This document shows, piece after piece, positions 1 through 28,771 of a DNA stretch of 34,299 bases. Origin of the DNA: Basidiobolus meristosporus CBS 931.73 (taxonomy: Eukaryota; Fungi; Basidiobolomycota); assembly GCA_002104905.1 (NCBI GenBank), contig MCFE01000805.1:1-34299 (forward strand). Reading direction: 5' to 3'. The notes beneath the pieces are model-generated. The model did not search any database. It saw nothing but the letters and a program-made list of their open reading frames with translations, and was not told the DNA's origin. The translations under genes were made by a program, and so were the position numbers. The number at the start of each line of letters is the position of its first letter. Positions within the stretch are counted from its first letter, which is position 1.

Positions 1-1882
1 CAAGCCTCTCTGGGCATTATTGCAGCTGTATGGCAATCTACAGCTTGTTTGGTATGATGCCACTATACCAATCTACCAAGTGGTATTTTCTTTTGCAATT
101 TCCCCTTATGCAATTAATATATTCCACTGTAGAATCACCCCTCTTTATTTTCTGACCCACTACTACCTTAGGTATTGCACATATAGCTTGAATCAAAAAA
201 AAACTATGGCCTCCTGCTCACCAACCTCAGCAAATGCACACACCTGCCATGATTGGCATACTTCTATGACATCAACATTATGGCTTTTTAGTGTGATACT
301 TGCAAAGTTGCTATGTACCTTGTATTGCTGGAAACATGTACATATTGCAACTATATGCTTGGCTGCTGCCACTTTTGCCATGTACACCTCCTGAATATCT
401 GCAAAGAACACTTTGGTATTTAAACACTATATTTCTACTCCCTTCTAGATTCTACTCCCCCTTATAGATGAGTTCTGGCTCTTGTCTATGTGAACTCTGT
501 ATTGAATGGTGTAGGAATTGGCTTGTGACCAAGAGAAATCTGATAACCTTGCTAGAGTTTTTGTAATAAAGATTAGTTGCATGTTGCAGCCAACCCTACT
601 TTGCATTATATAACTGATTACCCACACATAGGGGCTGCTCAGCTTCTTAATGCCATAGGTATAGATATATCCATGTGCAGATCTGTCTTCAGTTTTTTTC
701 CAACCCTTCCTGGCTGTCCTCCATGTGCTAATGCATCAAATCCATGACAGACTTCAAAGTAATATTCTTGTTGGCATTGGGATATAGCGGTACCTGCAAG
801 TTGACTTGTGTTCCTATCTCCCCACACATTGCTCCATAGGAAACTCCCATAAGGTGAAGCAAGGTCCAGTATTCTCCATACACTTTGTAAGATGGCATAG
901 TAAATGGATACAGTGGTGGCAGAGATTTACTCATTTGGCTTTATTTTGTGGTTTAGCCACTCAAATCCTGTCACTAACTCTTTGCACAAAGTTGTTGGTC
1001 CACCATATTGGCATTGATTATCCGCTTCTGGATTAATATTTTACAATGACTACATATGACTCCCAATGCTTCCAATGTGCACTTGGTAGAAATGGCTTCA
1101 GAATGCCACTTGAATAAGTACATATCCAGTTGATCCAGTCTTTGCATTTGTATTGTTGCATATGTGTATGAATGTAGGTTGGAGCCTGTAAGAAGTACTA
1201 AGGGTAGCAGATATTCTGCAATATCTTGCAAATTCTTTCAAATTTCTCCGGTATCTCAAAGTGCACATTTAGCTTGAAATGCCCAATGTACAACTTGGTT
1301 ATCAGTATAGAGATATTGCTGAAATGCAAATACATTGCTCCCAGTGGAATGTTGTTGCTCCAACAGATACCCTCTATCTTAAGTATCTCCTGTTTCTGAT
1401 TGATTCCATATTCTGGCCAAGGGCTTATAGCTTGCCAATTTTGCTGCAATTGCATGCTTACTTCTGTACATTCTCTCTGTGAAAAGATGATGTTTGTAGT
1501 GCTGGTGTTTGGGTAATAATAATGTGTGTGAGTTATGAAGTAAATCCCCTGGATCTCACACATTTGACAGCAATACCATCCATTATGCCCAGAAAAACCT
1601 GCTATCTTGCTGATGGCTGAGGTATCTCCAATGCAGATAATAATATGCGCTTTTACATGACAGCCATTTACCATTATCCTGCTGGAAAGCATACAAAATT
1701 CATCCAGTAATAGATACAGGTAGCTATCCAGGTTGGACAGTGATTTAGGCCTAGATACCAGTGAGACTACCATCCAATTATTGCTCTGATACTGCAAGAT
1801 GGGTGGCAGATTCAGATTGATGAGAATCAGTGGCCAGAAGGATTTGCTAGTAGAGTACCTGTTTAATGAGAATCCATCAAGC
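1..1882 (-). mobile_element. Degenerate CMC/EnSpm (CACTA-like) transposon, copy A: 3' half of transposase plus downstream region; runs off the window start
   Basis: Minus-strand ORFs 1198..1797 (YLYLLLDEFCML, IGDTSAISKIAGFSGHNGWYCCQMC) and 974..1231. DNA is the reverse complement of about 10850-13440 (e.g. 585-660 vs 12040-12125). Many stops and frameshifts. Confidence 0.85.
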
Positions 1883-4349
1883 GTATGAATATTAATTGGA
1901 GCCTGTGAGAAGTACTTAGGGTAGCGGATACTCTATAATATCTTGCCAATTTTTTCAAATTTCTCCAGTATCTCAAAGGGCTCATTTGGCTTGAAATGCC
2001 CCAGGTACAACTTGGTCATCAGTATAGAGATGTTGCTGAAAAGCAAATGCATTGCTCCCAGTGGAAACTTTTGCTCCAACAGATACCTTCTATCTTAAGT
2101 ATCTCAGGTTTCCAATTGATTCCATATTCTCGCCAATGGCTTATAGCTTGCCAACTTTGCTGCAATTGCATGCTTACTTCTGTATGTTCTCTTTGTGGAA
2201 AGATGAGTTCTTAGTGCTGGTGTTAGGGTAATAACAATGTGTGTGAGTTATGAAGTAAATCCCCTAGATCTCACACATTTGACAGCAATACCATCTATTG
2301 TGCCAGGAAAAACCTGCTATCTTGCTGATGGCTGGGGTATCTCCAATGCAAATAATAATATGCACTTTTACATGACAGCCATTTACCATTATCCTGCTGG
2401 AAAGCATACAAAATTCATCCAGTAATAGATACAGGTAGCTATCCAGGTTATACAGTGATTTAGGCCCAGATACCAGTGAGACTACCATCAGATTATTGCT
2501 CTGATACGGTAAGATGGGTGGTAGACTCAGATTGATGAGAATCAGTGGCCAGCAGGATTTGCTGGTAGAGTACTTGTTTAATGAGAATCCTTCAAGTGCT
2601 AAAGCAAAGGCATGGTCATACATAGCTTCATAGTGCCCTTGCTTCCTTGCTTTTTGTAATCTTTGACATTGAATGTATTGGATATGTTTGTGCTTGATTG
2701 ATACTGAGTGTGGTACTTTTTAGCTTCACATTATTTGTTTGACTTCATGAGCTTCTTTAGACAGGCTATTACCGGAATATACTCAGAGTAAGAACAATGT
2801 TCTGCCACAATTGTGGTAAATTCCTGACAAGTTGGACAATATGCAATGGTAGTATTTTCTGATGTGAAAGCCATGCAACTGTTAGCAAATGATGGAATCA
2901 GGACAGTCTCTGGGTCAATTGTTGCAGCCACATAACAGTTGTCCATTTATAGCATGTACATGGTAAGTTGCATCCCAGGATGATTTTGGCATGAAGTAGT
3001 AATAGTTCCTCAAAGCCCCCATTACTGATATTAGTGGATATGTGCCACTTATCTAGCCCCAACAACACATCATTCAACAATAGTTGGACTACTGGGCTCA
3101 CTTGACTCTATAAAGTATCCTTGGCAATTTTTCCATAGATGTTGTCATTGCATAATGCAATTTTATTGGGCTCATGCAGGGTACTGTTGCAGGCAAAGAT
3201 GTGCACACAATCCATCAGTGAGCATGCTTCTTCAGAGCTATAACACTGCATGCCATATTAGGAAGGCCAGGGTGAGCCCAAAGACATCACAAATGCACCT
3301 GACTCAGCTTGTGCATGGTGAAAAGTATGGCTGGGTGCTGTTATAAAACTTTCAAGTGCCAGTAAGATACTGTTGGTACAGTAGTGACTGTTGAATGGGC
3401 AAATAGTACTTGTGTGGCAAAACACTGGCTGCAATCCTTGTAGTACTTTTATGCTGTCTGTGCACTTCATAGCTGAGAGGCTTGCTACAATAACCACATG
3501 GTCTTTTTGTCTTCTCTTAGAGTATCAAATCAGAGTAGTTTTATCCATGGAGCTAAAAGTTTGAAACTCTACTATGTAACACTATTATATCACTTTTTGT
3601 CAACACTCATGTCAATGTAAGACAGTCTTGTGGTTGAGACATTGCACCTACATGAATTTAAGATTCAATGATGACCCAGCATAGTAAGCATTATAAATAA
3701 AATTATGGCACCACATACAGATGTATATGTAGCACCATTTCCCCTTTGGTTTGACTCACTTCCATATATATGCCACCAAAAAACAAAGTAAAGTTGCCTG
3801 GTTTCCAACCAAACCCCACTGCTAACCACAGCAGAAGAATGGTTGGACAACAGCTTGCTTCCACGTTCAGTGCAAAAGTGGGGCTTTGCTCAAAAAGACC
3901 CTGTGGACAGTGTGCCCACTAAAGGTAATATTGTGGGCTCCTCAGGCTCTCAGTTGAGTAGGCAATTAGGAATCACTGTGGAGCCACAAGCTGACTATAA
4001 TGCTGAGGCAGATATGAATGTAACAATAGCAATACCTGCAGTTGAAGACCTTCAAGTGGCCATCATAACATCATGACCACCCATATTAGCAAGTATGCTG
4101 TCAGCTCATACCACAGTATTAACAAGGCAATTAGGGCCAGTGGCTGAAAGGATCCATGCAATGGCCCAGAGAAGTCAGGAAATAGTCCAGAAAAGCTGAT
4201 GAGCAGAAAATATTGGTAGAGCAATCAATATACCAGGAAGAGAAAGCAGTACCTTTGCTGCAAAGAAGGGACTCAAGTAGCTTAATGTGAAAGCAATAAT
4301 TGAGCCATTTGATAGTGTAGCAGCAGAGGAACAACATACAATATTTGAA

Positions 4350-5755
4350 TGTTTTGCATCAACACTTAAACTTGACCTATTTTACTCTGATATAAAATAG
4401 ACTTGTTCCGTTGGATAGTGGCACATTGAGCCATGAGTGCCAAATAGTGCCATAATGTGCCTGAAAGTCATAGTAGACCTAAACTTGGCCACAGAGTGTG
4501 ACATATAGTTGTGCATATTCATGCAAAGTAGCCCCTGTGTTTCATGTACTGTGCAGGAGAAAATCAATTTTTTAACCTTTTTTTTGGGATCAAAATTGTG
4601 CATGATGTAAAAGAGCACAGACAGACTGAAGATATGCATCTGGTACACAATATTCATGGCACTCTAAATCTAGCCCCACAGGCTTGTAGAATGTCACAAA
4701 AATGCATGGCACTATCTTGGTCCACTGGTACTATCTGGCACTATAAGTGCTTTGTATAGGTTCTACTTTAGGGCTAATATTTAAATACAGTGCCAGATAG
4801 TACCAGTGGACCAAGATAGTGCCATGCATTTTTGTGACATGCTACAAGCCTGTGGGGCTAGATTTAGAGTGCCACGGGTATTATGTACCAGATGCATATC
4901 TTCAGTCTGTCTGTGCTCTTTTACATCATGCACAATTTTGATCCCAAAGAAAAGGTTAAAAAATTGATTTTCTCCTGCACAGTAAATGAAACACAGGGGC
5001 TGCTTTGCATGAATATGCAGAACTATATGTCACACTCTGTGGCCAAGTTTAGGTCTGATATGACTCTCAGGCACACTATGACACTATTTGGCACTCAAGG
5101 CTCAATGTGGCACTATCCAACGGAACAAGTCTAATATAGTACCCTAACTGATTTTCCCTAACCCACACATAACTAATCCCAGTTATGGTTTATGTTAACA
5201 CTTCCCAGAATCTATTATTAACTGTCACACCTGATCAATTTTAATGTGGTCATTGCATCCTCAACTGATCTGCTAAACCTTTCCAGGTGATTAGTCATCT
5301 GAGATCTATCCAACAACTTAGCAGTTGCCAAGACATCAGCTGATTAATGATGCAATGTCACATCTATCTCATGCACCTATAAACACCCCAACATATCAAA
5401 GAAACTAGACCAGTCTTTTGGCACTTACTAATTGAACTTGATCCGAAAAATATAAATAAAGTTTACTGAACCTTTGGGTTGAGTGTTTCTCAACAAATTT
5501 AAGATTGTACCTCAGCAAAATTAAGCATATAACAATTCCTTTCTAGTTTCCACCCAAGCCTAGCATATATAGCATTCCTAAGAACACCAAGCCTAGCCTA
5601 TATAGCAAACCAACTCTGATGCCTTTGTAGCCCAACTCAACTATATACATAGCCAATATCAGACCAGAACTTCTCTGCTAATCTTCACTTAGATGTCACT
5701 TAGGTTCAGTTAACTCATTTAAGAGCTTTATTACACTTTTCTCTTGGATACAACA
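4350..5755. mobile_element. Solo LTR (669 bp after removing the nested fold-back element); family distinct from the 349-bp Copia LTR
   Basis: Termini TGTT...AACA. 5-bp TSD TTGAA (4345-4349) / TTGAG (5756-5760). Reconstructed empty site aligns without gaps to copy C ORF2. Confidence 0.75.
4399..5132. mobile_element. 734-bp fold-back / MITE-like element, copy 1 (347-bp inverted arms, 40-bp spacer)
   Basis: AGACTTGTTCCGTTGG...CCAACGGAACAAGTCT. Arms 4399-4745 and 4786-5132. Flanked by AAT/AAT. Confidence 0.92.
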
Positions 5756-6131
5756 TTGAGGCATAGCAACAGCGCCCAAAGACAAAGTCCCACAGAAAAA
5801 CCTGTCACAGCATGGGAGGGTGAAAATGTAGTGATTATACCAATGCCAAAAAATCAAATGATATTGAAGATCTGTGAAGCCAAAACAGCTGTTTCTCAAG
5901 TGTAGAAAGCGCAGCCAGTTAAGCTACACTCTAGTGAGGTAGATGAGTTTGCAGAGAAAAGCCATTTGTCTACTACTGCCTCTATGTCCTCCATTGTAGA
6001 CAGAGTGGAGATTCCACTGATAGACAAAGTAGCATTGACAAGAACTCCCAAGGTTAGCATCAATGCCTATAGTGATATATTGGAACATCAATAGGTATTC
6101 TACAAAGTTGCAGCACTTCTTCAAGAGCAGT

Positions 6132-7069
6132 CCATATGAAAAATTTTTGTGATGATCCCATCAAAAGACTGTCACAGATTTGAAGTCCCATGACCAAGAG
6201 GTACTGATCCTGTCAGGACACTGTATAGAGACCATTGAAAATAATTGTGCCCCAGATTTCACAAAAAAACATAGGCATAATTCTTTATAATAACCATATA
6301 TAAGTGGCTTTTAAAAGATTCTCTGCCAATTCACTCACTTTCTGATCCCAGACACTCCATCACCTCCTACATATGGGTGCATTGATTGGCTATTGCCTCT
6401 TTTTCACACTCCTTACTTCCGGACTCAACTATTTATCTTACTTGTCACGCATACAAATTGATTTATTTCCATTAAAACTTTGGTTGTACCTCAATTGCCA
6501 ATTGTATTGACCTAAACCAGTCCCTATACCCTACACTAACCTTAAGCCCAACCCTACATTCAACAAGTAACTCCATTAAAGTCCACCATTCAATAAGTAT
6601 TTATGCTGTAATGTTCTGTTTCCTGGACTTTGGCAGTAACCCAACAGCTTTATGCCACTATTCATTCACTGGTTCCCTTATATCTTGGTCTTCAGCAAGC
6701 ACTGAAAGGTCAAGCACCTCATCTGCCAATCTTTACAATAAGTCCTTAAGATACTCAAGTTTGTTTTCTTGAGCACTACTCTTGAAGAAGTGCTGCAACC
6801 TCCTGGTGTGCCTGTTGATGTTCTAAAATTCCACTGAAGGTGTTGTGATAGTATTGTAAGCTCTTGATGTTATAGCCTTGTCTGTTGGTAGGATCTCCAC
6901 TGTGTCAGCAATGGACAATATGGAGGCTGTGGTAGACAAAATGCCTTTTTATACAAACACATCTACCTTGCTGGAGTGTAGCTCCACTGGCTGCACTTCC
7001 ACCTCTTGTGAGATCAGTTGTTTTGTTGTTGCTGGTTGGCCTTGGCTATAATTGGATTCAGTCTGTTCC
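6132..7069 (+). mobile_element. Left end of the CMC element (left TIR CCATATGAAAAATT..., subterminal region, ORF2 3' part in antisense)
   Basis: Colinear with 16924-17405 and 25361-26252. 6770-7030 is the reverse complement of 5880-6131. Confidence 0.8.
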
Positions 7070-8185
7070 GGTGCAGTGGGGTCACAGTGACACCCAATGA
7101 CAGATGTGCTCATTACTATATCTTCTACTTCCCTACTTCTCTACTACCCTTATTTTAGCTTTATCCCATTTGTTGTACTTGATCAATACTATCCCATAAG
7201 CTGGCTGACAATCACAGCTGCTTACCTTATTGCATAAATTATCCCTTGCCTTATGTAAGATAACTAGCTATGAGTGCTTCTATATTAGGCAGGTACCCAC
7301 GCCAGTACCCATGACACAATACCAGTCTGTGTCACCATCCCTACCATTTTTATACCATATATGGTACCCCTATATTACACAGGTTTCACAATTCTGATTC
7401 CTGATTGATTGAATGTGCTGTGCCTCTTGGAATCTTCCTGCACATACTCAGAACATTCTTACATCATTCCAATGTCATTAAGATTTCTATTGATATCCAT
7501 AACCTTCTGGAACACCATGATTAGTAATCACTTAGTCAGTAAGAAAAGTATATAAGGGAGGCTATCCCTTATCAGTGAATCATCATCCCTTTTATCAATA
7601 TACTGACTTGTTGATTAGTGTGATCACTCCTACCTGCTGCTACCTGAGCTTCCAACCCCAGACCACAGGACACTCCCAGGAAACCATGCTGACAGCCAAC
7701 TAACCTTGGAGGCACTACTTGTGAGGAATACTCAGAGTAGGTATCTTTTATTATATTTGATTCTTTCCCAAGTTTGTTCTTGTACAAGCAAAGATACTCT
7801 TCTGTCTTTGTGACTATTGACCACAGCTGCATTCTTATCAATTCCCTGCTGGTGGAGTTTACAGTTGTGTTGACTCTGGAAGCTTTACAACATTATCATC
7901 TCAAAAGAATGCTGAACCCAGCACATACTTTTGTTAAGATGCCAACTGTGTTGGGGATTGTAGCTCAGTAGTTTTCCCTTGACAAGCTTGTGGCTTTATT
8001 CCCCATCACATTAGATCAAAGACAGAACCCAAGTATTCCTAGCAAGCTTTTGCCAGAGGTTATTGCACCCAGTGAACATCCCAATCACAAAACACTTGAG
8101 AAGTATTGGACATGTCTCTCCCTTGGACCTATACACCACCACATTGGGCTTATGGCATTGATTGGCTAAAACTGCAGTTTTTTCC
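7070..8185 (-). mobile_element. Right-end (3') region of the CMC element, inverted, lacking the terminal ~110 bp
   Basis: Reverse complement of about 13610-15150 with a single copy of the 443-bp unit. Confidence 0.85.
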
Positions 8186-9638
8186 TCATACTTCCCTGTC
8201 TCTGGCTTGGGTAGACATTTTCCCTTTACCTTTTCCTTTATCACTGCCAGGTCTTTCACTGCTGCTTTGTCTGAGTGCTTCTTGTAGCAAACTAAGTTTT
8301 TCCCATGATAAATTATGCTCAGATGCATTTATTTTGGCCTTTTTGGCCCTGGCTGGCACTCTTCTGGCAACCTGATATTTCTTTTCTGCTTGTGTTGAGC
8401 TATCAACTGTAGTTGTTGCAGGCTCCTGAGAAAGCTGCTGGTTTTTATCACTGCCAGGTCCTTCACTGCCACTTTGACTGAGTACCTCTTCAGTGGTACC
8501 ATGCTTTTTGTTTGATAAATATTGTGCTGGTGCATCCATGTCTGCCTGCTTGTCCTGTGCTGAAGAGTTGGTGCCTGCCTACTTGACTCTGATTGAAGCT
8601 CTTCCAGCTACCTGACATCTCTTTGATGCTTGTTTGGGTACTTGGCCCTGCTTGTAACCATCTCTTGAGGCAGCCTCTGCTTTTAGCCATGGCACCCTTG
8701 TTCTTCTGCATTTGATAGTTTCTGCTACTCTAAAGACACTTTCTGAGCATACAAATGCTGGCACAAAATCTGTGTGCCAGTATGAATCCTGGATAATGCT
8801 CATTGAGCAAGTCAAGTGCATTCTGCTTGGCCTTGAGTTCCTGATGGTCCTATGAAATGCCAGCCTTAAGGTGCTGACATGCTACACTTCTGACAGCCTC
8901 TTTTATATTAGCTTACTCTTCATCATTGCACTCAATGGCTTCACAGATCTACAATGTCTTTTGACTTTTAGGCTTTGATATAAACACCGCATTGTATCCC
9001 TCCACATGCTGTGATAAGTTTTTCTGTGGGCTTATCTTTGAGCACTGTTGTTGTGCTTCAAAGACTGTACAGTGTTCCTCTGCTTTTGCATTGGAAAATG
9101 GCTCAATTCTTGGCTGTGACATTAAGCTACTTGAGTTCCTTCTCTGCAGCAAAGATACTCCTTTCTCTACATGGGATATTGATTGCTCCAAGCAAATTAT
9201 CTGCTCATCTAGTTTCTGGACTATTTTGTGAATACTTGGGGCCATTGCATCTATCCTATCAGCAACTGCACCTAATTGCTTCATTAATGCTTTGGTATGA
9301 GCTGACAACATACTTGCTAATATAGGTGGTGGTGATCTTATGACAGCCACTTGGAAGTCTTCTACTGAGGGTACTGTATTTGCTGCATTGTCCTCTGCCT
9401 GAGTATAAAGGTCAGCTTGCCACTCTGCAGAGGTTCTCAGTTGCTTACTTGACTGAGAGCCTAAGGAGGCTGCATTATTACCTTCAGTGGGTACACTGTC
9501 AACACAGCCTTTGTTGAATATAGCCTCACTTGTTGCACTGAATGTGAAAGCAAGCTGTTGCCCACCCATTCTTTTGCTGCCATTGGTGGTGGGGTTTGGC
9601 TGGGAACCAGACAAGTTTGCTTTATTTTTTGGCGGCAT
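8186..9638 (-). pseudogene. Transposon accessory ORF2 (copy C); 229-aa open part, continuing in frame through stops into 8490..8711 and a low-complexity region
   Basis: MPPKNKAN... start shared with copy B. Coiled-coil-like stretch (LMKQLGAVADRIDAM...LEQSISHVEKG). No family recognised. Confidence 0.6.
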
Positions 9639-9739
9639 ATATAAAGCAGCAAGTCAAACAAGAGGGGAAGCAGTGTTACACATTATGAGTATGTGGTGCC
9701 ACTGCTATATTTATAGTACTTACTATGGTGGGTCATCAT

Positions 9740-12120
9740 TGAATCTTACATTCATGTAGGTGCAATGTCTCAAATACAAGACTGTCTTAAGTTTGCATGA
9801 GTATTGACCAAAAAGTGATGAAATAGCATTACATTTTTGAAGGTCAAACTGTTTGCCCCATGGACAAGACTACTTTGATGCAATGCCTTTAGAGAAGGGA
9901 AAAAAGACCATGTAGCTATTGTAGCAAGCCTCTCAGCCATGAAGCATGCAGACAGCATAGGAAGTATTACAAGGATCACAGCCAGTGTTTTGCCACAAAA
10001 GTCATATTTGACCATTCATCAGCTACTACTGCATCAACATTATCTTTCCAGCTGGTTGATACTTCTATATTGGCCCTGCCTGTCTTTGTCACCTTGCACA
10101 AAGTGAGTCAGGTGAGTTTGTGGCACCTTTAGGCTCACCTCAGCCTTCTGAATATGGCATACAGAGTGAGAACTCCAACACAGAAGGCTCACTGATGGAC
10201 TGTGACCCTATCTCCCCTAACAACAGTACCACACATAAGCCCAGTCAAATCCCAATATGCAATGAGACAACACCAATTGAGCAAATAGAAGGATATTTTA
10301 TGGAGCCAAGTGAGCCCAGTAATCCATCTACTGGTGGGTGATGTAATGTTGTGGCCAGAGAAGTGACACATTTCCACTAATATTAATAATGGGGGCTTTG
10401 AGGACTCATTACTACTTCTTGCAAAAATCATTACCGGATGCAACTTACCACATACATGGTATAAGCAGGAAACTTGCATGCAGCTGGCAACATGTGACCC
10501 AGAGACTGTCCTGATTCCAGCATGTGTTAACAGTTGCATAGCATTTATATCCAAAAATGACACAATTGCAACATGTCCAATTTGTCAGGAATCCACCACC
10601 ATTGAGCAAAAACATTGTTCACACTCCAAGTATATTCCAGTAATACTACATCTAAAGAAGCTTGTTCAGTCCAACAAATACTGTGAGGCTATGAAGTTCC
10701 CCACTCATTATCAATCAAGCACAAACATATCCAATACATTGTATAGCAAACATTGCAAAGAGCCAAGCAGCAAGGACTACTTTGAAGATATGTATGGCCA
10801 TGCATTTGCCTTAGCACTTGATGGATTCTCATTACACAAGTACTCTACCAGCAAATCCTGCTGGCCACTGATTCTTATCAACCTGCATCTGCTGCCTATC
10901 TTATGGTATCAGAGCAAAAATTGGATAGTAGTCTCACTGGTATTTTGCACTAAATCACTGTCTAACCTGGATAGCTACTTGTGTCCATTACTGGATGAGT
11001 TCTGCATGCTTTCTATTTGGATAACAGTAAATGGCTGTCATGTAAAAGCTTTTATTATTATGTGCATAGGAGATGCCCCAGCAATCAGCAAGATAGCTGG
11101 CTTTTCTGGGCACAGTATACAATATTGCCATCAAATGTGTGGGATCCAGGAGATTTACTCCATAACTTACACACATTATTATTACCCAAACACCAACACT
11201 AAGAGCAGCATTTTCCACAGAGAAAACATACAGAATTCAGCATGCAATTGCAGCAAAGTTGGCAAGCTATAAGCCATTAGCCAGAATATGTAATCAATTG
11301 GAAACCAGAGATACTTAAGACACAGGGTATTGGTTGGAGTAAAAGCTTTCCACTGGGAGCAATGTATTTGCTTTTCAACAATATCTCATACTGATGACCA
11401 ATTTGTACAAGGGGCATTTTACGCTCAATCAGCCCTTCAAGATACCCAGGAAATATGAAAGAATTGGCAAGATGTTACAGCATCTGCTACCCTAAGTACT
11501 TCTCACAGGCTCCAATCAATATTCATACCCAAATGAAGCAATGCAAATGCAAAGACTGGATGAGCTGTATATGTATTTATTCAAGTGGTCTTCTGAAGCC
11601 ATTCCTAATAGGAGTATATTGGAAGTATTGGGAGTCATATGTGGACATTGTGGGAATATTTATCCAGAAGGAGATCATCAATGTCAACTTGACACATGTA
11701 CAGCTGTTGTGTGAGGAGTTTGTAACAGGATTTAAGCAGCTACACTACAAACATAAAGCTTCATGTGTAGATCTCTACTGCTACTGTATTCATTCTCTAC
11801 TCCATCTTGCTTGGTGTGTGGAGAACATTGGGCCTTGCCTCACCTTTTGGGAGTTTCCTATGGAGCAGATGTGTGGGGAGATAGGAAGACAAGTCAAGTT
11901 GTAGGTAATACCATATCATAATCTCATCTAGAATATTATGTTCAAGTTTGTCATGGATTTGATGAGTTGGCACATGGAGCACAGTCAGGAAGAGTTAGAA
12001 GATACTGACAACAGATGTGTACATTGAGAGACCTATGCCTATGGCATTAAGAAGCTAAGCAGCCCCAAAGCATGGGTAATCAGCTAAGTAATGCAAAGTT
12101 GGGTTGGGTGCAATAAGCAA
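9740..12120 (+). pseudogene. CACTA/EnSpm-type (Transposase_21/Tnp2 plus DUF4218-like) transposase pseudogene; decayed coding-like sequence continues after the fold-back insertion to about 13280
   Basis: Motifs C-N-C...CPIC, LALDGF...SCWPLILINL, LDSYLCPLLDEF, IGDAPAISKIAGFSGH, and HSLLHLAWCVENIGPCLTFWEFPMEQMCG, all typical of EnSpm transposases. Start is approximate. Confidence 0.85.
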
Positions 12121-12126
12121 CTAATT

Positions 12127-14905: not shown

Positions 14906-15270
14906 GTTAAGGATACTGGCATGGTTACCTGCTTGATACAGAAGTACTTACAGCTAGTAATTGTACATTAAGTGAGGGATAACATATGCAATAGGATAAG
15001 CAGGTGTGATAATCAGCCAACTTATGGGATAGTAATTTTCAAGTAAGACAATTGGGATAAAACTAAAATGAGTGTAGTAGAGAAATAAGGAAGTAGAAAA
15101 TATAGGAATGAGCACATCTGTCAGTGAGTGTCACTGTGACCCCACTACACCATCATAAGATTGTCAAGAGGGTCACTAATTCCAAGCTGCTGGTATTATG
15201 GTGGTCTGCAAATGGGATCCTGATGGCTGATCCAGATTGGTCCCACCTGCTGACCAAATTATTTTTCATA

Positions 15271-16923
15271 ATGGACTGTGCCTTTGCCTTGGCATTTGAT
15301 AAATTGTCACTGAACAAGTACTCTACCAGTAAATCCTGCTGGCCACTGATTGTTATCAACCTCAATCTGCCCCTAGCACAAATGGTTTCAGAGCAGAGAT
15401 TTGATGGTAGTCTCACTGGTATCTAGGCCTAAAGCACTGCCTAACCTGGACAGCTACCAGTACCTGCTGCTAGATGAATTTTGTATGCTTTCCAGCAGGA
15501 TACTTAATGATGGCCATTATAGCAAAACTCATATTATCATCTGCATTGGAGATACCTCACCCATCAACAAGATAGCTGGCTTTTCTGGGCACAATGCATG
15601 GTATTATTGCTGAATGTGTAAGTTCCAGGAGACTAACTCTAGAACTCACAAACATTACTAGTATCCAAACATAAACACTAAGAGCATCATCCTCCCACAG
15701 AGGGAGTGTACAGAAGTGAGCATGTAATTGCAGTAAAGCTGGCAACCTATGAGTCATTGGTCAGAGGATGGAGTTAATTGGAAGCCTGAGATACTTAAGC
15801 AATGCATTCTCTGTTCAGCAGTATCCCTATACTAATGGCCAAGTTGTACATGGGGCATTTCACTCTGAATGACCCCTTCAGGATACCAGAAAACCTGAAA
15901 GAATTGGCAAAATATTACCGAGTATCTGCTACACAGTGTACTTCTCACATGGTCCAATCAGTATTCATACACATATGCAACAATACAAATGTAAGGACTG
16001 GATGAACTGGATATGTGTTAATTCAAGTGGCCTTCTTAAGCTATTTCTACCACAAGTACATTGGAAGTGTTGGAAGTCATATGCTGACTTTGTAGGAATA
16101 TTTATCCAGAAGCAAATCACCATTGCCAAGTTGACACATCTACAGCTTTTATGCAAGGAGTTTGTAACAGAATTTGAGAGGCAACACCACAAGCATAAAG
16201 CTGAGCATGTATGTCTCTGCTGCTACTGTATTCATTCTCTACTCCATCTTGCTTTGTGTGTGGACAATATTGGGCCTTGCTTCACCTTTTGGGAGTTTCC
16301 TATGGAGCAGATGTGTGGGGAGATAGGAATATAAGTCAAATTGCTGGTACTACCATCTCCTAATCTCATCAAGCATATTACCTTCAATTCCATCATGGAT
16401 GCAATGAGATGGCACTTGGAGCATAGCCAGGATGAGTTGGAAAATACTAGGGACAGATGTGCATATGGAAAAACTTACGCCTCTAGTATTAATAGGCTAA
16501 GCAGCCTTAATGCATGGGTAATCAGGCAAGTAATGCAAAGTTGGGTTGGGTGCAATAAGCAGCTAATTTGTATTAGGACAACTCCACCAGAGTATTCCAG
16601 GTTTTCCTGGTCACAAGCCAATTTCTACACCATTCAAAACAGAATGTGCACAAGTAAGAGCCTGAGTGAACCTATATGGGGGACTAGAATTCAGCAGGGA
16701 GAAGGAATATATTGGTTAAATACCAGGAGGTTCTTTGCAGATATTCCGGAGTTATTTATTGCAAAAGTGGCTGCAATCATGCATAGGTTTGCAAGATGTA
16801 TTTGTTACCAGCAATGCAAGGTATATGGCAGCTTTGCAAGTATGACAATAAAAATCTGTAAAGCCAAGGCTATGGAAATGTGTCATTTTCAGCAGGTGTG
16901 CGCATATTTAGAGGTTAGTAAGC
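15271..16923 (+). pseudogene. CMC/EnSpm transposase relic, copy D (5'-truncated by the copy C right end, 3'-interrupted by a left TIR)
   Basis: ORFs 15401..15613, 15936..16334 (HSLLHLALCVDNIGPCFTFWEFPMEQMCGEIG) and 16341..16931. Confidence 0.85.
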
Positions 16924-17405
16924 CCCTATGAGAAATTATTGAGATGATCCCATCAAAAGGCCGTTACAAAGTTAAAGTCCTGTGACTAAGAAGTACTGAT
17001 CTTGTGGGGAAACTGTCCAAAGACCATTGAAAATTAATTGCACCCCAAATTTCACAAAGAACTTAGTCAAAATTTTTCCATCACAGCAATGCATAAGTGG
17101 CTTTTGATTGGTTCCCTGCCAATTTGCTCACTTTCTGATCCCAGACACTCTATTGCCTCCTATGTTTGTGTGAATTAATTGGTTATTTCCTCTTTTTCAC
17201 ACTCCCGACTTCCTTACTCAACCCTTTCTCTTACTTTTCATCCATACAAATTGATTTATTTCTGATAAAACTTCAGTTGTACCTCAATTGTCAAATTGTG
17301 CAGACCTAAACAAGTCTCTATACCCTAAACTAACATTGAGCCCAACCCCACACTCAACAAGTAACTCCATTAAAATCTACTACTCAATATGTGTTTCTGC
17401 TGTAT
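16924..17405 (+). mobile_element. Left end of the CMC element (CCCTATGAGAAATTATTG...)
   Basis: Colinear with 6132-6610 and 25361-25835. Confidence 0.85.
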
Positions 17406-20142: not shown

Positions 20143-20491
20143 TGTTGTAAGAGTCTTGGAGATATTGGAAGTGATTGGGAGAACAAGTAGATTATGTGGT
20201 TCTCACCTAATGATTTATTGAATGTAAAAGTAGTATTTATACTTTTACCTGGTCTTGGCATTGCAAACACGTAGAATAGGTTAAGAAAGGTCCCAAGAAC
20301 ATGTGTCAAAGTTTGGGGCTGTTTGGACAACTTTGAGAATTTTTCATGTTCTGGGTACCTGGTATTTTGGTGAAAATATTCTAAGTAAATCCCAACAAGG
20401 AATTTGGTCAGTATTCTCTAGGATTTGAAGGTAATGATCTAAGTGACTAAGTTTGGTGAATATTTAGGTGGAAATACAAATTTTTACAACA
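20143..20491 (-). repeat. 3' LTR of the Copia element
   Basis: TGTTGTAAGAG...TTTTTACAACA. 11 substitutions plus two 1-bp indels versus the 5' LTR by manual alignment. Confidence 0.97.
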
Positions 20492-20501
20492 CTCCCACTC
20501 A
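20492..20501 (-). other. Polypurine tract (TGAGTGGGAG)
   Basis: Lies between the pol stop codon (20503-20505) and the 3' LTR. Confidence 0.85.
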
Positions 20502-20502
20502 G

Positions 20503-23500
20503 CTAAATGTTCATACTGACTAGTCCTAATTTTGACCTAAGATATTCAAACTTGTCTCTAGCTAATGGTTTGGTAAATATGTCTGCAATCATTTCATCTG
20601 TAGGACAGTAAACTAAGCTAACTAAGTTATTCTCTATAGCTTCACGTATGAAATGATGTCTAATATCTATGTGCTTGGTTCTAGCATGAAAAGTTGGATT
20701 TCTACCTAATTGCATACATCCTTGATTATCTTGAAATAAAGTAATAGGCGTTTTTTGACATAGGCCTAAATCTGTAAACAGCTTTCTCAACCACATTGCT
20801 TCTTTTGTAGCTTCACAGGCTGCCATATACTCTGCCTCTGTGGTGGAAAGTGCTATGGTTGGTTGCTTTCTTGAATTCCATGAAATTGCTCCTTTACAGT
20901 AAAGAAAAGTGTATCCTGTGGTGGATCTTCTGTCTTCTAAATTTTGTCCCCAATCTGCATCAGAGTATCCCACAAGATCTTGTTCTGAGTCCTTATAAGT
21001 GTATCTTAAGCAGATATCAGCAGTTCCTTTTAGGTATCTAAAAATCCGCTTAACTGCTGCAATATGATCAGATCCATAGTTCTGATTATGTTGGCTGACA
21101 ACTCCCACTGAATATGAGATATCTGGACGTGTTCCAAGAATGATATACATCAGACTGCCAACCATAGATTGATAAGGAAAGTTAGGGCTTTCAGATGGCA
21201 CCAAGCTCTCTTGATTTGGATGAGTTTTGACCAAGTTAAGGTTTGTCTCCATTGGGGTAGCTGCCGGCTTACAGTCTTCCATTTGGTACTTCTTTAGTAT
21301 ATCTTGAATATACTTGGACTGGCTTAGGGTGATAGTATGGGTACTTCTGTCTATGGAGAACTGAATCCCTAAGTAGTAACTAAGTTCTCCTAAATCAGAC
21401 ATCTTGAACTCCTTAGATAGGCTGGATTTAGTTTCTTCTAATGTTTCTAGGTTATTGGCGGCTATAATAAGATCATCCACATATAGAGCTAATAGAACTG
21501 GATTTGCTCTATCTGGCTTACAGTATATACTATAGTCAGCATTACTTCTTTTGAAACTCAGAGATTCCAGATAAGAATCTATCTTGCAATTCCAGGCTCT
21601 TGGTGATTGTTTGAGACCATATAGTGACTTTTTAAGCTTGCAGACCAAATGGGGGTTATCTTGGTCAACAAACCCATCAGGCTGGTCCATATACACGTCC
21701 TCATCAAGTTCTCCATTCAGAAATGCAGTTTTTACATCCATTTGATGAATAAAAAACTTATATTTGGCTGCAATAGCCAATATTAATCTGATGGAATTAA
21801 ACTTGGCTACCGGTGCAAAGGTCTCAGTATAGTCAAGTCCTTTTGTTTGAGAGTATCCTTTGGCTACAAGTCTTGCTTTGTATCTTTCAATTGTACCATC
21901 AGCCTTGTATTTTGTCTTGAAGACCCATCTGCATCCAATTGATTTTTGGTTGATTGGTAATTTGACTAAGTCCCAAGTTTGATTTTCCATCAGTGCCTGA
22001 TATTCCTCAGTCATTGCAGATCTCCAAAACTTTGTCTGAGGGCTATTTAGGGCCTCTTTTACAGTCTGGGGTTCATCAATATTGACTGAATAGGCATAGG
22101 CTAAGTTTGTACCCTCATTGATATAGTAATTTGGGCTATTTCTTGTCCGATTTGATCTCTGGGCATTTGATGCTGGAATGATCACTTCTGGGATATTCCT
22201 GGGCACTGATTCTGGCTGAACCACAGTTGTAGAGTCCTCTGGAGTGAAAAAATTTTCATTGCTTTGCTCTGATTCAATCCTGACAATTGGTGGACTTGAG
22301 ATCATATTTTTGTCATCATCTGATGTCATTTTTTGTGAAAATTTTGAATTTTCATCAAACAACACATCCCTGGACTTGATAAGCTTCTTTGCTTTGGTAT
22401 TGTAGAGTCTGTATGCCTTACTCTCATTGCAGTAGCCCAAAAATATGCATTTTTCACTTTTTGGCTCAAATTTTGACTGATTTCCGGCCAGTTTTTTGGC
22501 ATATGCTGTACACCCAAATATTCTTAGATGTTCTGCACTTGGTCTGTATCCATATCATGCTTCAAATGGAGTAGAATCACAAAGTATTCTGTTATAACTC
22601 CTACTTTTAAGGTATACAGCAGTGGCAACTGATTCTGCCCAAAAATCATAGGATAATTTTTGATCATGGATCATAGATCTTGCCATATCAATTATTGATC
22701 TGTTAGCTTGTTCTGCTACTCCATTTTGCTGTGGGGAGTAGGGTACAGTAGTCTCTTGCTTTATCCCATGAATTTTGCAGAAGTGGATGAAGAGTTTTGA
22801 GGTATATTCTCCACCATTGTCAGAGCGTTTTTTCTTGATTTTTTCACCAGTTTCTCTCTCCACCATGGCTTTAAACTCCCTGAGCTTAGACAGAGCTTCT
22901 TCCTTTCTCTCCATGAAGTAGACCCATGTGTATCTTGTATAATCATCAATAAAAGTGATTAAATACTTCATCCCACCTAAGGATAAATTTTGCATAGGTC
23001 CACACAGATATGAGTGAATTAGATCTAATTTTTTCTTAGTTTTGATCAACCCAGAGCTCTTGAATGGTTGTCTGGCTTGTTTCCCATATATGCAGGCTTC
23101 ACAGTGCTCCAAATTAGCTGGGGGATCAATTTTCACTCCAGAAATTAGCTGATCTTTGATCATTTTACGCAAATAATCAAAATTGATGTGTCCAAATCTC
23201 CTGTGCCAAAGCATTGGTGTTTCTCCATTTAAGTTACTTTTATTGGCTTCCAAATATGATGGAATATAAGTCAACTTGTATAGATTCTGATCTCTGATGC
23301 CCAAAGCAATATGGGCACCACTTTGATCAGTGATCCTGCATCCAGAATTGTCAAAACTGAAACTGAGTCCTTCTGCTGTGGCCTTGCTTACAGAGAGTAG
23401 GATCTTGGCTATTTCTGGTACATAGAGTACTTCTTCAAAGGTCAGTGTATGGCTTCCTTCACTGCTTCTAAGGTTTACTTGGATAGTTCCTTCTCCCACT

Positions 23501-24446
23501 GCATCAAGTGTTCTATTGTCACCCATGAAAACCTTCTTAATTGGAATTTCTTGATATTGGGTAAAAAGTTCTTTTAGGTGTGTAAAGTGTTGAGATGCTC
23601 CAGAGTCAATATACCATGTCTGAGAATCCTTGTTTGTGGTCATATTTAGTGCAGATATGAATAGCCTATCTTCAGTTGTTGCAGCATTTCCATATTCAGG
23701 CTTCTTTTGCTGATAATCTCTCTTTTTGAGACACTGGTCTGATGTGTGTCCTTTCCTTTTGCAGTAGTTGCAAAACAGGTTGCTGTTGCCTTTGTAGGGT
23801 CTTGGGTACCTCCTTTGTTGGTTATCATTGCTTATTAACGCATTTTCTTCTTCCTTCTTATTGGCGCTTGATTTTCTTAATTCTTCATCCAGGAGCCTTC
23901 CATATACGTAATTTAAGGTCAAATCTTCAGTTCTGGACTCTAGGGCTGATACAAGGCCCTGAAACTTGTCTGTCAGGCTATTCAGGATGGTAACTATCAC
24001 ATCCTCATCAGTAGTTGGTACGCCCACAGATTCCATCTCATCTACCAGCAGGGTAATTCTGTTAATTAGATTTTTCATTTCTTCTCCTGGCAGCATCTTT
24101 GTAGTAAAGAATTTTCTTCTCAGATACATTTTCTTGGCAGCTGAACATGACTGGTAGGTGTCTTCTAATGCCTTCCAGGCATTCTTTGCCGTTTTTGCTC
24201 TTGAGATTGAATTAGCAATTTGTCCTTGACATTAAGGCAAATGCAGTTAAAGGCACTTTGTTTTTTCTTCTGGTACTTTAAGGCTTCCTCTCCCATGCTT
24301 TTAGGAGGGCATTCTTCTCCCATGACAATATCCCAAAGGCCTCTTTCTTGTAGCAGCATCTTCATCTTCACCTTGCACACTTGGTAGTTAGATCCATCCA
24401 ACTTTTCAGCAGAGGGAAAAATTCCAGTAATAGCAGTAGTAGACAT
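20503..24446 (-). pseudogene. Copia gag-pol polyprotein, disrupted
   Basis: KLDGSNY (gag), CNYCKRKGHTSDQC knuckle, WYIDSGAS (PR), HRRFGH...CEAC and RSDNGGEY (IN), YVDD (RT), YSDADW / ADIFTK (RH). One-base frameshift at about 24207; in-frame TGA at 22555-22557 where Trp is expected; first integrase catalytic Asp replaced (HSYLCGP). Confidence 0.95.
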
Positions 24447-24465
24447 TACAAAGAGTGACAGCTTG

Positions 24466-24477
24466 GGGCTCATAACC
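24466..24477 (-). other. Primer-binding site GGTTATGAGCCC (internal, half-tRNAiMet type)
   Basis: Directly abuts the 5' LTR. Same type as the Ty5 / Drosophila copia PBS. Confidence 0.85.
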
Positions 24478-24826
24478 TGTTGTAAGAGTCTTGGAGATAT
24501 TGGAAGTGATTGGGAGAACAAGTAGATTATGTGGTTTTCACTTAATGATTTATTGAATGTAAAAGTAGTTTTTATACTTTTACCTGGTCTTGGCATTACA
24601 AACACGTAGAATAGGTTAAGGAAGGTCCCAAAAACATGTGTGCAAAGTTTGGGGCTGTTTGGACAACTTTGAGAATTTTCATGTTCTGGGTACTTGGTAT
24701 TTTGGTGCAAATATTCTAAGTAAATCCCGACAAGGAATTTGGTCAGTATTCTCCAGGATTTGAAGGTAATGATCTAAGTGACTAAGTTAGGTGAATATTT
24801 AGGTGGAAATACAAATTTTTACAACA
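24478..24826 (-). repeat. 5' LTR of the Copia element
   Basis: Direct repeat of 20143-20491. Confidence 0.97.
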
Positions 24827-25204
24827 GTTTATAGTGTGATACGCATTGATTTGCATTTATGTTAAAGAAAATATCCAAATATCAGATTTTACCTACCACA
24901 ATAGTGGTATCTAATTACGCATGTGATGCATATATTACAAGTTGGCAAGATCATCCAAGCCAACCTCATTGTGTCAGATTGTACTATAGTGTGCAAGATT
25001 GTTCCACATAGTGCAAAATTGTCTAAGAGCAATCCTGCCCACTGGTAGCTACAATATTGCACCCAATTATTCTTTGCAATTGTAGCTTGCTCCATACACC
25101 CTGGCACAGTACAATTGAACAGGTTTATTATACTAGCCTTATTGCTGGATTCTGACAGCTGATCTAAATTGGATACACCTGTAGGACCAGTTATTCTCAT
25201 TGGG

Positions 25205-25360
25205 ATCACATAACTGATCACCCACGTATTGCAGCTGCTTAGCTTCTTAATGCCCAAGGCAAAGGTGATTTCATATGCACATCTGTGCTTAGTATTTTGC
25301 TGCTTTTCCTGGCTGTCCTCCCATTCCAATCCATCACATCCATAAGGAGCTTTAAGGTTT
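25205..25360 (-). mobile_element. Short CMC transposase 3' fragment (copy E)
   Basis: Aligns with about 610-760 (AACTGATCACCCAC...GCTTCTTAATGCC). Confidence 0.7.
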
Positions 25361-26252
25361 CCCTATGAGAAATTATTGTGATGATCCCATCAAAAAGCCA
25401 TCACAGATGTAAAGTCCTGTGACTAAGAGGTACTGATCCTGTCAGGACACCATGCACAGAATGTTGAAAAATAATTTCACCCTGATTTCACAAAATATCT
25501 AGCCAAAATTTTTCATCACAACAATATATAAGTGGCTTTTGATTGGTTCCCAGCCAGTATGCTCACTTTCTGATCCCAGACACCTGATCACCTCCTACAT
25601 TTGTGTGTATTGATTGGCTATTGCCTCTTTTCACACTCCTTACTTCCTTGCTCAACCATTTCTCTTACTTTTCATGCCTACAAATTGTTTTTCTCCATTG
25701 TAACTTCAGTTGTAGCACAATTGCCAATTGAATTGACTCATACAAGTCCCCATTCCCTACACTAACATTAAGCCCAACCCCACACTCAATAAGTAACTCC
25801 ATTAATATCCACCACTCATTAAGTATTTCTGCTGTAAAGCTCTTTTCCATGACCTTGATGGGAACCCAACAGCTTTAAGCCACTGTTTATTCACCAGTTC
25901 CCACTTGTCCTGGTCTTCAGCCAGCACTGCACGGTCTAGTACCTCATTGACCAGTCTTTTGAATAAATTCATGCAATATTCAAGTGCATTTTCTTGAGCA
26001 CTGCTCTTGAAAAAGTGCTGCAACCTCTTGGTGTGCCTAGTAATGCTCCAAAACTCCAACAAAAGCATTGTGATAGTCTTTCAAGTTTTTGATGTTGTAG
26101 CCTTGTCTGTGAGTGGGATCTCCACTCTGGCAACAATGGAGGATGTGGAGGCTGTGGTAGACAAGTTGCATTTCTCTGCAAACTCATCTACCTTGCTGGA
26201 ATGTAGCTCAACTGCCTGGGCTTCCAACTCTTGTGAATACAGCTGTTTTCTT
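25361..26252 (+). mobile_element. Left end of the CMC element with the ORF2 C-terminal region in antisense
   Basis: CCCTATGAGAAATTATTGTGATG start; colinear with 6132-7030. Minus ORF 25802..26068 (FKSSAQENALEY...VLAEDQDKWELVNKQW). Confidence 0.85.
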
Positions 26253-27132
26253 CCCTATGAAAAATAATTTGGTCCCACAGGTGGATCCAATCTGGATCAG
26301 CTGTCAGGGTCTTGCTTAGAGAACATCATAATACCAGCAGCTTGGAATTAGTGACCCTCTTAACAATCTTATAATGGGATCACAACAGTGTTTTGCTAAT
26401 TTTACAATCAAACAAATGGATAAAGCTTGACAAGATTTGATTAGTGCTGTGACAATAATTGCATGGTATTGTTGCAATCTTTTTGCGCTCTACAACTATT
26501 TTTAGTGGATCCAACTGGCCAGGACTTCCAATTGCCTTATATGGCAAGACTCCTGATGGTATTTTGACAGCCTTGCAGCAAGACTCTGATGGCATTACAT
26601 CAGCAGTATGACAGCATACAGGTAGTTCTGTATGATGCTACCAGACCAATTTACCAAGTGGTATTTCCTTTTTATACCACCCCTTGTGCAATTCATATTT
26701 TCCACTGTAGAATCACCCCTCTTTATTTGCTTACCCACTACTACCTTGGGTATTCCACATATAGCTCAAATCAGAAGAAACTATGGCCTCCTGCTTATTA
26801 ACCTCTACAAACATGCACTCCTGCCACAATTGACATACTTCTATCACCTTAACTTTAGGGCTTTTTAGTGTGATACTTGCAAAGTTGCCATATACCTTGT
26901 ATTGCTGGTAACATATACATCTTGCAAACATATGCTTGGTTGATGCCACTTCTGCCATGAATACCTCCTGAATATCTGCAAAGAACTTCTTGGTATTTAG
27001 CCAATATGTACCTTCTCCTTGATGGTTGCAGCTAACCCAACTTTGCATTGCTTAACTGATTACCCACACATTGGGGCTGCTTAGCTTCTTAAAGCCATAG
27101 GCATGGGTGTCTCCATGAGCACATTTGTCCTC
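26253..27132 (-). mobile_element. Internally deleted, inverted right part of the CMC element (right TIR, ~120 bp, deletion, then 3' region)
   Basis: 26253-26375 is the reverse complement of about 15150-15273. 26372-27132 is the reverse complement of about 12000-13640, without the fold-back insertion. Confidence 0.8.
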
Positions 27133-27473
27133 AGTCTTGGAGATATTGGGAGTGATTTGGGAGGACAAGTAGATTATGTGGTTTTCACTTAATGATTTAT
27201 TGAATGTAAAAGTAGTACTTAAACTTTTACATGGTCTTGGCATAACAAACATGTAAAATAGGCTTAGAAAGGTCCCAAGGACATGTGTGCAAAGTTTGGG
27301 GCTGTTTTGGCAACTTATCTAAACTTTAGGTTCTGAGCACCTGATATTTTGGTGAAAATACTTTAAGTAAATCCCAACTAGGAATTTAGTCAGTACTCTC
27401 TAGGATCTGAAGGTAATGATCCAAGTGACTAAGCTAAGTGAATCTTTAGGTGGATTTACAAATTTTTACAACA
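27133..27473 (-). repeat. Copia-family solo LTR missing about 8 terminal bp
   Basis: Aligns along its length with 20151-20491; ends TTTTTACAACA. Confidence 0.9.
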
Positions 27474-28232
27474 TATCTTTGATTATGACTGAGACTATTT
27501 GGTATTGATATTAGGTTGAGTGGAGTGTAGTAAGTATTGTGATCAGAACTAAATGTTCACTTAGCTTAGTCACCTAAGCCATAGTCTACAGATCTCAGCA
27601 AAGTCTGGCCAAATTCCTAGTGGGGATATACCTAGAATGTACTGTGGGAGTTTTGGAGATGTTTGAAGGGATTGGGAGCACAAGTAAATTATGTGATTTT
27701 GACTTAATGATTTATTGAATGTAAAAGTGGTTTTATACTTTTACATGGTCTTGGCAAAACAAACATGTAGAATATGCTTAGAAAGATCCCAAGCGCATGT
27801 GTACAAAGCTTATGGCTGTTTGGACAACTGAAAAAAATCTCATGTTCAGGGTACCTGATGTTATGGTGAAAATGATCCAAGTAAATCCCAATAAGGAATT
27901 TGGTCAGTATTCTCTAAGATTTGTAGGTAATGATCTAAGCAGCTAAGTTAGGTAAATATTTAGGTGGAATTACAAATTTTCACAACAGAATATTCTCTCC
28001 AAAATGTAGAGTATCTAGGATGTGAAAAATTATTGAGATGTCTAAACAGCCCCTAACATTGTACATATGTTCTAGAGATCTCCCTAAACATATTCTACAT
28101 GTATGTATTTCCAAGACCATGTAAAAGTGTAAATGCTACTTTTAAATTCAATAAATCATTAAGTGAAAACCAAACATTCTACTTGCTCCCCCCCCCTCAA
28201 TCACTTACAATATCTCCAAAACTCCTACAACA
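27474..28232 (+). mobile_element. Older related Copia relic (pol end, PPT, 3' LTR) in the opposite orientation, split by a nested solo LTR
   Basis: 27474-27639 resembles the reverse complement of about 20375-20545 (pol end, TGAGTGGAG, LTR start). 27988-28232 is the reverse complement of the remaining LTR, ending ACTCCTACAACA. Confidence 0.75.
27640..27987 (-). repeat. Copia-family solo LTR (348 bp) nested in the LTR of the relic
   Basis: Aligns with 20143-20491. Flanked by GAATG (27635-27639) / GAATA (27988-27992). Confidence 0.85.
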
Positions 28233-28771
28233 ATCACCTTCATTATGTAAGAGCATCACATATGCTTTCTAAACCACAGTTGTTACCACCAAAACTAATG
28301 ATCAGTTGATGCTCAATAAAATGGCACAGGAATGTTAGCAACCTGGGAGATCATATCATCTGCCAATGTGTTGCATATGAGAGCAATGGGTTAGAATAAA
28401 CCTCTGATGGATCATGGAGAAACCTAGGTTGCTTAGTGCCACTTGGCCATGGAGTTGACCACAAAAAATCGACAGGGATCCCTAGTTGATGATTGGCGAT
28501 CAAGTGGGGACACCCCGAAATTGTAGGGAAGCTACCACGGGCGACGGGTTTCTAGAAATTTCGGAGAAGAGAGTACAGAAGGCATATAAAGAACGGGACC
28601 CCGGTGCGAGGGAAGGGCACAAGAAAATGAATTCCGTTCAATTAGCAAGGTTGTCTGGATCCATCCTACGTGGCCTCCTTGTTACTAAACGGAATAGAGG
28701 GAATCGCCCGCGCGGGTGGACCCACCTCACCAGAGGGATGGATCCGGGTCGCAATAGGGCGGAGATTCATC

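Follow-up and report, generated by a model that had tools for sequence, protein, structure and literature searches.

The contig MCFE01000805.1 of the fungus Basidiobolus meristosporus CBS 931.73 (assembly GCA_002104905.1), which in its entirety (34,299 bp) forms the window analysed here, carries an island of nested transposons from which the dinucleotide CpG has been almost completely erased. Within positions 1–28469 we counted 68 CG dinucleotides against 1133 expected from base composition, an observed/expected ratio (O/E) of 0.06 that corresponds to a loss of ~94%, and the ratio stays between 0.02 and 0.17 in every 1-kb bin. The gene side, 28471–34299 (~5.8 kb), holds 286 CG at an O/E of 0.84. 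The border between the two is sharp, with a single CG from 26487 to 28469 and then 33 within the following 530 bp; one further CG, in the sequence TCGA, straddles 28470/28471. We infer that the probable cause was CG methylation of the DNMT1 type in transposon domains, with subsequent deamination of 5-methylcytosine (5mC), a reading, including its writing enzymes, of the composition, reciprocal decay, context bias, domain behaviour and sparing of gene duplicates that we observe.

CpG content and its surviving contexts

The original prediction, made from the letters of this window alone, had put 65–70 CG in 1–28465, with ~1000 expected, into a CpG-depleted stretch of 28 kb with a sharp border, and counting and sliding O/E values bore this out, as they did its 19 CG at 29221–29520, where we find the same number, and its 11 of 38 strand contexts reading TCG or CGA in that genic sample, where our count is identical. 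It had also noted that CA and TG remain abundant, which is not the pattern of classical repeat-induced point mutation (RIP) at CpA. Indeed, TG and CA have O/E values of 1.41 and 1.39 in the island, GC is normal (1.16) and TA shows no enrichment (0.82), and both RIP indices are negative (TpA/ApT 0.83, where RIP gives >0.89; (CpA+TpG)/(ApC+GpT) 1.54, where RIP gives <1.03).

The scarcity of TCG/CGA that had been noticed among the survivors is equally real. The 136 strand contexts of the surviving island CpGs comprise 42 ACG, 46 CCG, 41 GCG and 7 TCG (9 TCG once the border CpG is included), compared with 159, 153, 91 and 169, respectively, in the gene part; the TCG share is 30–33% in genes, against 7/136 among the island survivors. 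Counted by site, T-flanked CpGs make up 7 of the 68 survivors. The corresponding figures are 142 of 286 for the gene part (Fisher p = 5e-10), 539 of 993 for another genic locus of this genome, 21.7 kb long (p = 2e-13), and 32 of 99 for the CpGs that paralogue comparison within the island reconstructs as ancestral (p = 8e-4). Older parts of the island are poorer in CpG (O/E 0.05) than a young Copia-type retrotransposon inserted in it (0.12).

Independent decay of CpG sites in each copy

Comparison of paralogous island copies over 22.7 kb of alignment shows how the sites were lost. Among 968 double differences between paralogues, TG/CA is the commonest with 166, the runner-up reaching 43; where at least one copy retains CG, the partner is TG in 36 cases, CA in 25 and CG in only 6. 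The 166 reciprocal pairs indicate that much of the decay took place in situ, in agreement with the reciprocal decay first noticed by eye, whose CATGG/CACAG example was found four times on the opposite strand. Where an ancestral CpG could be inferred (99 columns), CA stands 121 times in the copies, TG 119 times and CG 24 times, a strand-symmetric loss, and a simple two-lineage model puts CpG loss per lineage since copy divergence at ~0.92. At non-CpG sites, C>T amounts to 0.076 per site versus 0.037 for T>C, an ordinary AT bias, and CpA exceeds CpC/CpT in C>T by a factor of only ~1.5. Since ~0.92 was lost at CpG compared with 0.076 C>T elsewhere, CpG cytosines decayed ~15–20 times faster than other cytosines. 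The loss is CpG-specific and runs into TG and CA equally, in each copy independently.

Part of the deficit predates the copies. CpG O/E is estimated at ~0.4–0.5 for the family ancestors, and about half of the deficit was inherited from element lineages that were already CpG-poor, the remainder having been lost in place. Young duplicates (≥90% identity) have a transition/transversion ratio (ts/tv) of 1.67 and almost no CpG-type differences. The two long terminal repeats (LTRs) of the Copia element (20143–20491 and 24478–24826) are 96.3% identical and retain 1–2 CG each; because only 1 of the 13 differences between them is CpG-type, the element was evidently CpG-poor when it inserted. We dropped a balance in which the excess of NTG products over genic DNA sums to roughly the lost CpGs, as it assumes that genic DNA equals the element background.

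Faster loss at TCG

To compare contexts, we fitted decay (rate × time) per strand context against the genic baseline and obtained 1.14 for A, 0.99 for C, 0.81 for G and 3.12 for T, which gives a T-to-others ratio of 3.2 (bootstrap 2.5–4.4; likelihood ratio 61.6, 3 degrees of freedom). C>T rates are thus unequal across NCG after correction for composition (T 3.12 versus 0.81–1.14), and equality would have spoken against the bias as originally described. Of the T-flanked strand sites in paralogue columns, 2% have survived as CG, compared with 10–11% for A, C and G; with two more islands of the genome added, the values are 4.7% and 14–16% (p = 5e-4), a difference of about 2-fold. All four NCG contexts are at least 80–90% erased, and TCG was lost ~2–3 times faster, not exclusively. 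Of the bias against TCG proposed earlier, its fastest decay (ratio 3.2) therefore stands, and exclusive targeting does not, ACG, CCG and GCG each being ~80–90% lost. Among tetranucleotides, TCGA has 0 survivors against a baseline of 144 and ACGT 9 against 81.

Domain borders and other islands

Genes are spared, yet unique DNA within 240–600 bp of repeats is also depleted. Beside the last repeat of the island, unique positions 28233–28469 hold no CG against ~8 expected, and at isolated solo LTRs in a gene-rich locus ~600 bp of flank lies at O/E ~0.3. Depth in the source sequencing run is down to the single-copy value from ~28300, and a contig from a run whose behaviour is that of same-strain RNA has its 5′ end 34 bp ahead of the gene domain's first CpG. 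The domains spread into the flanks and have their borders at active genes. CpG erasure is moreover general in the genome, two further islands being alike (locus L002, MCFE01000068.1, beyond 14 kb; locus L004, MCFE01000092.1, 1–4.5 kb), with O/E values of 0.00–0.35 and ends at the first gene.

Two CpG-poor segments at other loci have features of their own. L004 1–3292, near the contig end, has a GC content of 46% and just one CpG over its 3.3 kb (O/E 0.01), and its decay products are strand-asymmetric (TG O/E 1.63 versus CA 1.14). L007 6934–7456, which lies upstream of a solo LTR in a gene-rich locus, is CpG-free over ~520 bp and has no match to the repeats used for comparison; long-range spreading or an old, unrecognised element accounts for it.

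Tests for a duplication trigger

A runs test on 13 paralogue pairs revealed no strand-coherent mutation tracts (71 runs versus 71.0 expected). Duplicated genes retain their CpGs: the strain has at least five ATP2 genes (in the window and at loci L001, L002, L004 and L005), 84–91% identical in DNA, with CpG O/E ≥0.9 in the genic parts, and a 7.2-kb segment of the window that is 99% identical to MCFE01000068.1, and could be an allelic or assembly duplicate, likewise has a genic CpG O/E of ≥0.9. DNMT4/RID was not detected in CBS 931.73 in the source table of an eLife 2023 study (PMC10538959). There is no sign of a repeat-recognising trigger in these tests. Thus, of the repeat-specific, context-biased C>T system put forward at the outset, C>T/G>A change at CpG in transposon domains with a TCG bias holds, and recognition of repeats as the trigger finds no support, given that gene duplicates are spared, single-copy flank is depleted and tracts are absent.

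Some further properties of these duplicates deserve mention. The ATP2 proteins are 98.6–100% identical over the 445 residues compared, and their neighbouring genes differ, the pair on contigs 805 and 68 excepted. Substitutions between those two contigs number 43 in 1100 bp of the LTR part, 6 in the 237 bp of the unique gap and 4 in 5830 bp of genic sequence (p = 2e-30), a ~60-fold excess on the transposon side. Derived alleles, polarised with other LTR copies, fall 19/13 between the contigs, with 15 A:T>G:C and 8 G:C>A:T; as they are mostly A:T>G:C, these differences bear no deamination signature. The step could reflect a boundary of gene conversion or loss of heterozygosity, fast-mutating heterochromatin or a polishing artefact.

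Transposons and genes of the window

The features of the window are listed in Table 1. By self-BLAST, 20.7 kb of the island has paralogues within the window, including unclassified repeat families, and DNA contigs of the source run stack 10^2–10^4 times deeper on island families than on the single-copy flank. Variants in that run (40 of 925 variable places) are too few for a mutational spectrum; there are a few family-level variants.

Table 1. Features of the 34,299-bp window, in order of position
Feature	Position	Strand	Basis and remarks
Nested transposon island	1–28232		Composition, O/E 0.06; open at left contig end
Decayed DNA transposon, tnp2 (PF02992) transposase remnant	1883–4349	−	Paralogue of 9057–11528
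Fold-back element, ~750 bp	4394–5140		Arms 92–95% complementary; second copy 12120–12865
Second tnp2-type DNA transposon copy	9057–11528	+	PF02992 on open reading frame 10478–11272; self-BLAST
Copia-type LTR retrotransposon	20143–24826	−	Pfam RVT_2, rve, gag_pre-integrs, Retrotran_gag_2; LTR pair
Three solo or partial LTRs, same Copia family	27133–27473; 27648–27988; 27987–28232	+; +; −	Self-BLAST
Shared 7.2-kb segment	27133–34299		99% identity with L002 8118–15279 (MCFE01000068.1)
Single-copy stretch, last repeat to gene	28233–28469		0 CG versus 8–9.5 expected (P of zero ~3e-4)
Transcribed, spliced region	28436–30500	+	RNA contig with three GT..AG introns, 5′ end ~28436
CpG-normal gene domain	28470–34299		Composition, O/E 0.84; TCG not depleted
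ATP2, mitochondrial F1 beta subunit	30735–32412	−	Product identical to ORX78907/ORY01543, B. meristosporus CBS 931.73

The Copia element is nearly complete: its long open reading frames are broken by one in-frame stop and a single frame change, and it retains 20 CG (O/E 0.12). In the RNA-like run, whose contigs are few in the island except for LTR transcripts, summed depth at 24501–24900 over the Copia LTR is ~3,500–17,000, far above the rest of the island. Such depth, together with a window copy that carries a single stop and a single frame change, means that members of the family may still be active somewhere. Its LTR copies at 27133–28232 are the last recognisable repeats before the border, and a poly-C run at 28187–28195, at the inner end of the last fragment, differs in length from one source-run contig to another. 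With the Copia reverse transcriptase as query, a protein word search matched no Basidiobolus transposon proteins.

The two tnp2 copies in the table, among several decayed ones in the island, are 80% identical and differ at 31 reciprocal TG/CA sites. They lie inverted to each other, and at 23 of the 31 sites the cytosines lost from the two copies belonged to one and the same strand of the chromosome (p = 0.01), which suggests that this asymmetry follows the strand of the chromosome, through replication or transcription, and not that of the element. Both copies of the fold-back element are CpG-free bar one or two sites.

On the gene side, public gene models within 28436–30500 cover 28842–29547 (174 amino acids) and 29718–30389 (223 amino acids), for which a Pfam search conducted reading frame by reading frame, with exons unjoined, gave no match. 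No close paralogues of the single-exon neighbours were found, and a barwin-like family yielded one extra locus of strain CBS 931.73 and two B. ranarum loci, the latter without transposons. The next-best matches of ATP2 are from Entomophthora, Dispira and Coemansia, which places the host in Zoopagomycota, outside Dikarya. The original prediction had allowed for a host outside Pucciniomycotina, and such is the case. In a second Basidiobolus genome with the same species label, neighbouring genes are ~87% identical and repeat families are shared at 80–90% (24501–30500).

Proposed methylation and its alternatives

In the process that we favour, transposon chromatin would be methylated at CG dyads, now or over a long past, the likely writers being the DNMT1–UHRF1–HELLS maintenance set, perhaps with two Dim-2-like enzymes. 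5mC would change to thymine ~15–20 times more often than other cytosines mutate, and each CG would become TG or CA on either strand, separately in each copy. Active lineages would also be affected, so that new copies would arrive with roughly half the expected CpG density and lose the rest in place. The methylated domain would take in a few hundred bases of unique DNA and halt at the start of an expressed gene, producing the sharp border, and the ~2–3-fold faster loss at TCG/CGA may come from the methylase, deamination or T:G repair favouring one flanking base over another. The eLife table lists for CBS 931.73 a DNMT1 (ORX99839) whose PCQ and ENV motifs are intact in the study's alignment, a pair of Dim-2-like proteins (ORX98566, ORX84408), UHRF1 (ORX90637), HELLS (ORY02995/ORX88944) and CDCA7F; DNMT3 and DNMT5 were not detected (PMC10538959). 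Elsewhere, enzymes of the Masc2/DNMT1 class and deamination of 5mC have been linked with CpG-type C>T change in the transposons of fungi (Amselem 2015, PMC4352252), and the transposons of Rhizophagus are under DNMT1-type CG methylation (PMC8647823).

Several points weigh against this account. The entry for experimental 5mC in this species is blank in the same table (PMC10538959), a 2026 review describes 5mC as near-undetectable in early-diverging fungi (PMC13297926), and a search of sequencing runs returned DNA and RNA runs only, with no bisulfite or nanopore library. The disappearance of TCGA alongside the survival of ACGT makes the context bias orientation-specific. The spontaneous decay of 5mC in mammals is not known to favour TCG, and for this reason the 5′-T bias needs an additional cause. 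At T-flanked sites, the T-side strand had changed 18 times versus 11 (p = 0.26), a comparison underpowered by its few copies; a strand-specific, deaminase-like preference may lie behind this lean.

One alternative is an active defence related to RIP or to methylation induced premeiotically (MIP), in which a DNMT1- or Dim-2-class protein or another deaminase would act at (T)CpG in repeats. Such a defence would be of one kind with the TpCpG hypermutation known from rusts and anther smuts, and consequently older than Dikarya. TCG decaying ~2–3 times faster than the other contexts, a bias specific to 5′ T (TCGA 0/144 versus ACGT 9/81) and the 18:11 lean towards the T strand would fit such an activity. 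Neurospora Dim-2 is able to drive RIP without RID. The Pucciniomycotina that show the bias likewise carry DNMT1/Masc2-class enzymes only (PMC4352252, PMC12730594). We nevertheless consider this unlikely, because VCG (V being A, C or G) was erased almost as fully, unlike in a strict TCG pattern, gene duplicates and the 99%-identical 7-kb duplicate are intact, unique flanks are depleted, strand-coherent tracts are absent, young duplicates (≥90%) have a ts/tv of 1.67 with hardly any CpG-type differences, and the LTR pair decays ordinarily. The 15–20-fold excess itself requires no enzyme, as methylated CpGs elsewhere reach that ratio. It is similarly improbable that the 5′-T bias as such is strand-specific and enzyme-made, by a RID-independent, DNMT1-/Dim-2-coupled C-to-T process on the methylated transposon chromatin of Zoopagomycota that would be the same system as in rusts and smuts and would predate Dikarya.

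The deficit might instead be mainly a property of the elements, whose lineages would be CpG-poor through selection for escaping methylation-based silencing or because mutation pressure had long acted on the master copies, with little having happened in the island. The Copia LTRs, 96.3% identical yet with 1–2 CG each and 1 of 13 differences CpG-type, and the O/E of ~0.4–0.5 in family ancestors point this way, but the 166 TG/CA pairs together with 61 CG/TG or CG/CA pairs place a loss of ~0.92 per lineage after divergence, older island parts (O/E 0.05) are poorer than the young Copia (0.12), and unique flanking DNA is depleted too. As a disfavoured CpG would still call for a CpG-specific mutator or methylation, we regard this as quite unlikely. 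Finally, the TCG excess alone could have arisen on top of methylation by chemistry or repair, through accelerated deamination of 5mC within T-5mC photodimers or poorer T:G repair after a 5′ T, with no dedicated enzyme. Such an origin would suit a modest bias (2–3 fold) superimposed on all-context erasure, and in mammals sunlight-induced dimers at pyrimidine-5mCpG are a mutation hotspot; CCG, the other pyrimidine context, is however no faster than ACG or GCG, which leaves this explanation very improbable.

Relation to known systems and implications

CG methylation followed by 5mC deamination has close parallels. Known examples are the CpG decay of Tuber and rust transposons (PMC4352252), CG-methylated transposons in Rhizophagus (PMC8647823) and CpG depletion in vertebrates. 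Decay under DNMT1/Masc2-class methylation is, like that of the island, CpG-specific and symmetric into TG and CA, and shares with it the confinement to transposon domains, the sparing of genes, borders at active genes and the presence of DNMT1, UHRF1 and HELLS. It differs in that methylation in Basidiobolus is deduced from sequence and that a 5′-T bias is unusual for 5mC decay. TpCpG hypermutation of transposons in Pucciniomycotina was reportedly described by Hood in 2005. Members of that group (Microbotryum, Puccinia, Melampsora, Rhodotorula) resemble the island in C>T change of repeats at CpG that is worst after a 5′ T, and resemble Basidiobolus in having DNMT1/Masc2-class enzymes and no RID. 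There, however, hypermutation strikes TCG alone and spares VCG (Horns 2012, PMC3318451), whereas in Basidiobolus, a host of zygomycete grade, every NCG is at least 80–90% erased with TCG only 2–3 times faster, and the erasure is far more complete (O/E 0.01–0.06). The suggestion that the known range of the TpCpG defence is extended here accordingly holds for the host, which lies outside Pucciniomycotina, and fails for the pattern, since VCG is erased too. RIP of Neurospora and other Ascomycota also disables repeated DNA by C>T transitions, but its CpA target, duplication trigger (acting on genes too), strand-coherent tracts, TpA enrichment and RID are none of them seen in Basidiobolus.

According to an entomophthoralean genome paper, RIP has been seen nowhere but in Dikarya (PMC10515909), and a kingdom-wide k-mer screen, which scored k-mers enriched in repeats and non-coding DNA, reported RIP-like signatures in Ascomycota only (PMC12543289); with enriched k-mers as the only score, such a design would probably miss signatures of the depletion type. 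In the literature collection that we searched, there was no account of CpG-erased transposon islands in Basidiobolus or Zoopagomycota. Most likely, the island represents a known kind of process, a methylation footprint on transposons, in a new fungal lineage.

Early-diverging fungi are usually seen as organisms of N6-methyladenine (6mA) with almost no 5mC, and B. meristosporus is in the data set behind that view. The near-total erasure of CpG says that CG-directed silencing acted hard and long in this species, and a low bulk 5mC is then simply explained, the substrate having been mutated away to ~2–3 CpG per kb. CpG density alone maps the heterochromatin borders of the genome to within tens of bases, and the 5′-T bias held in common with rusts is a testable lead on whether it originates in DNMT1-class enzymes.

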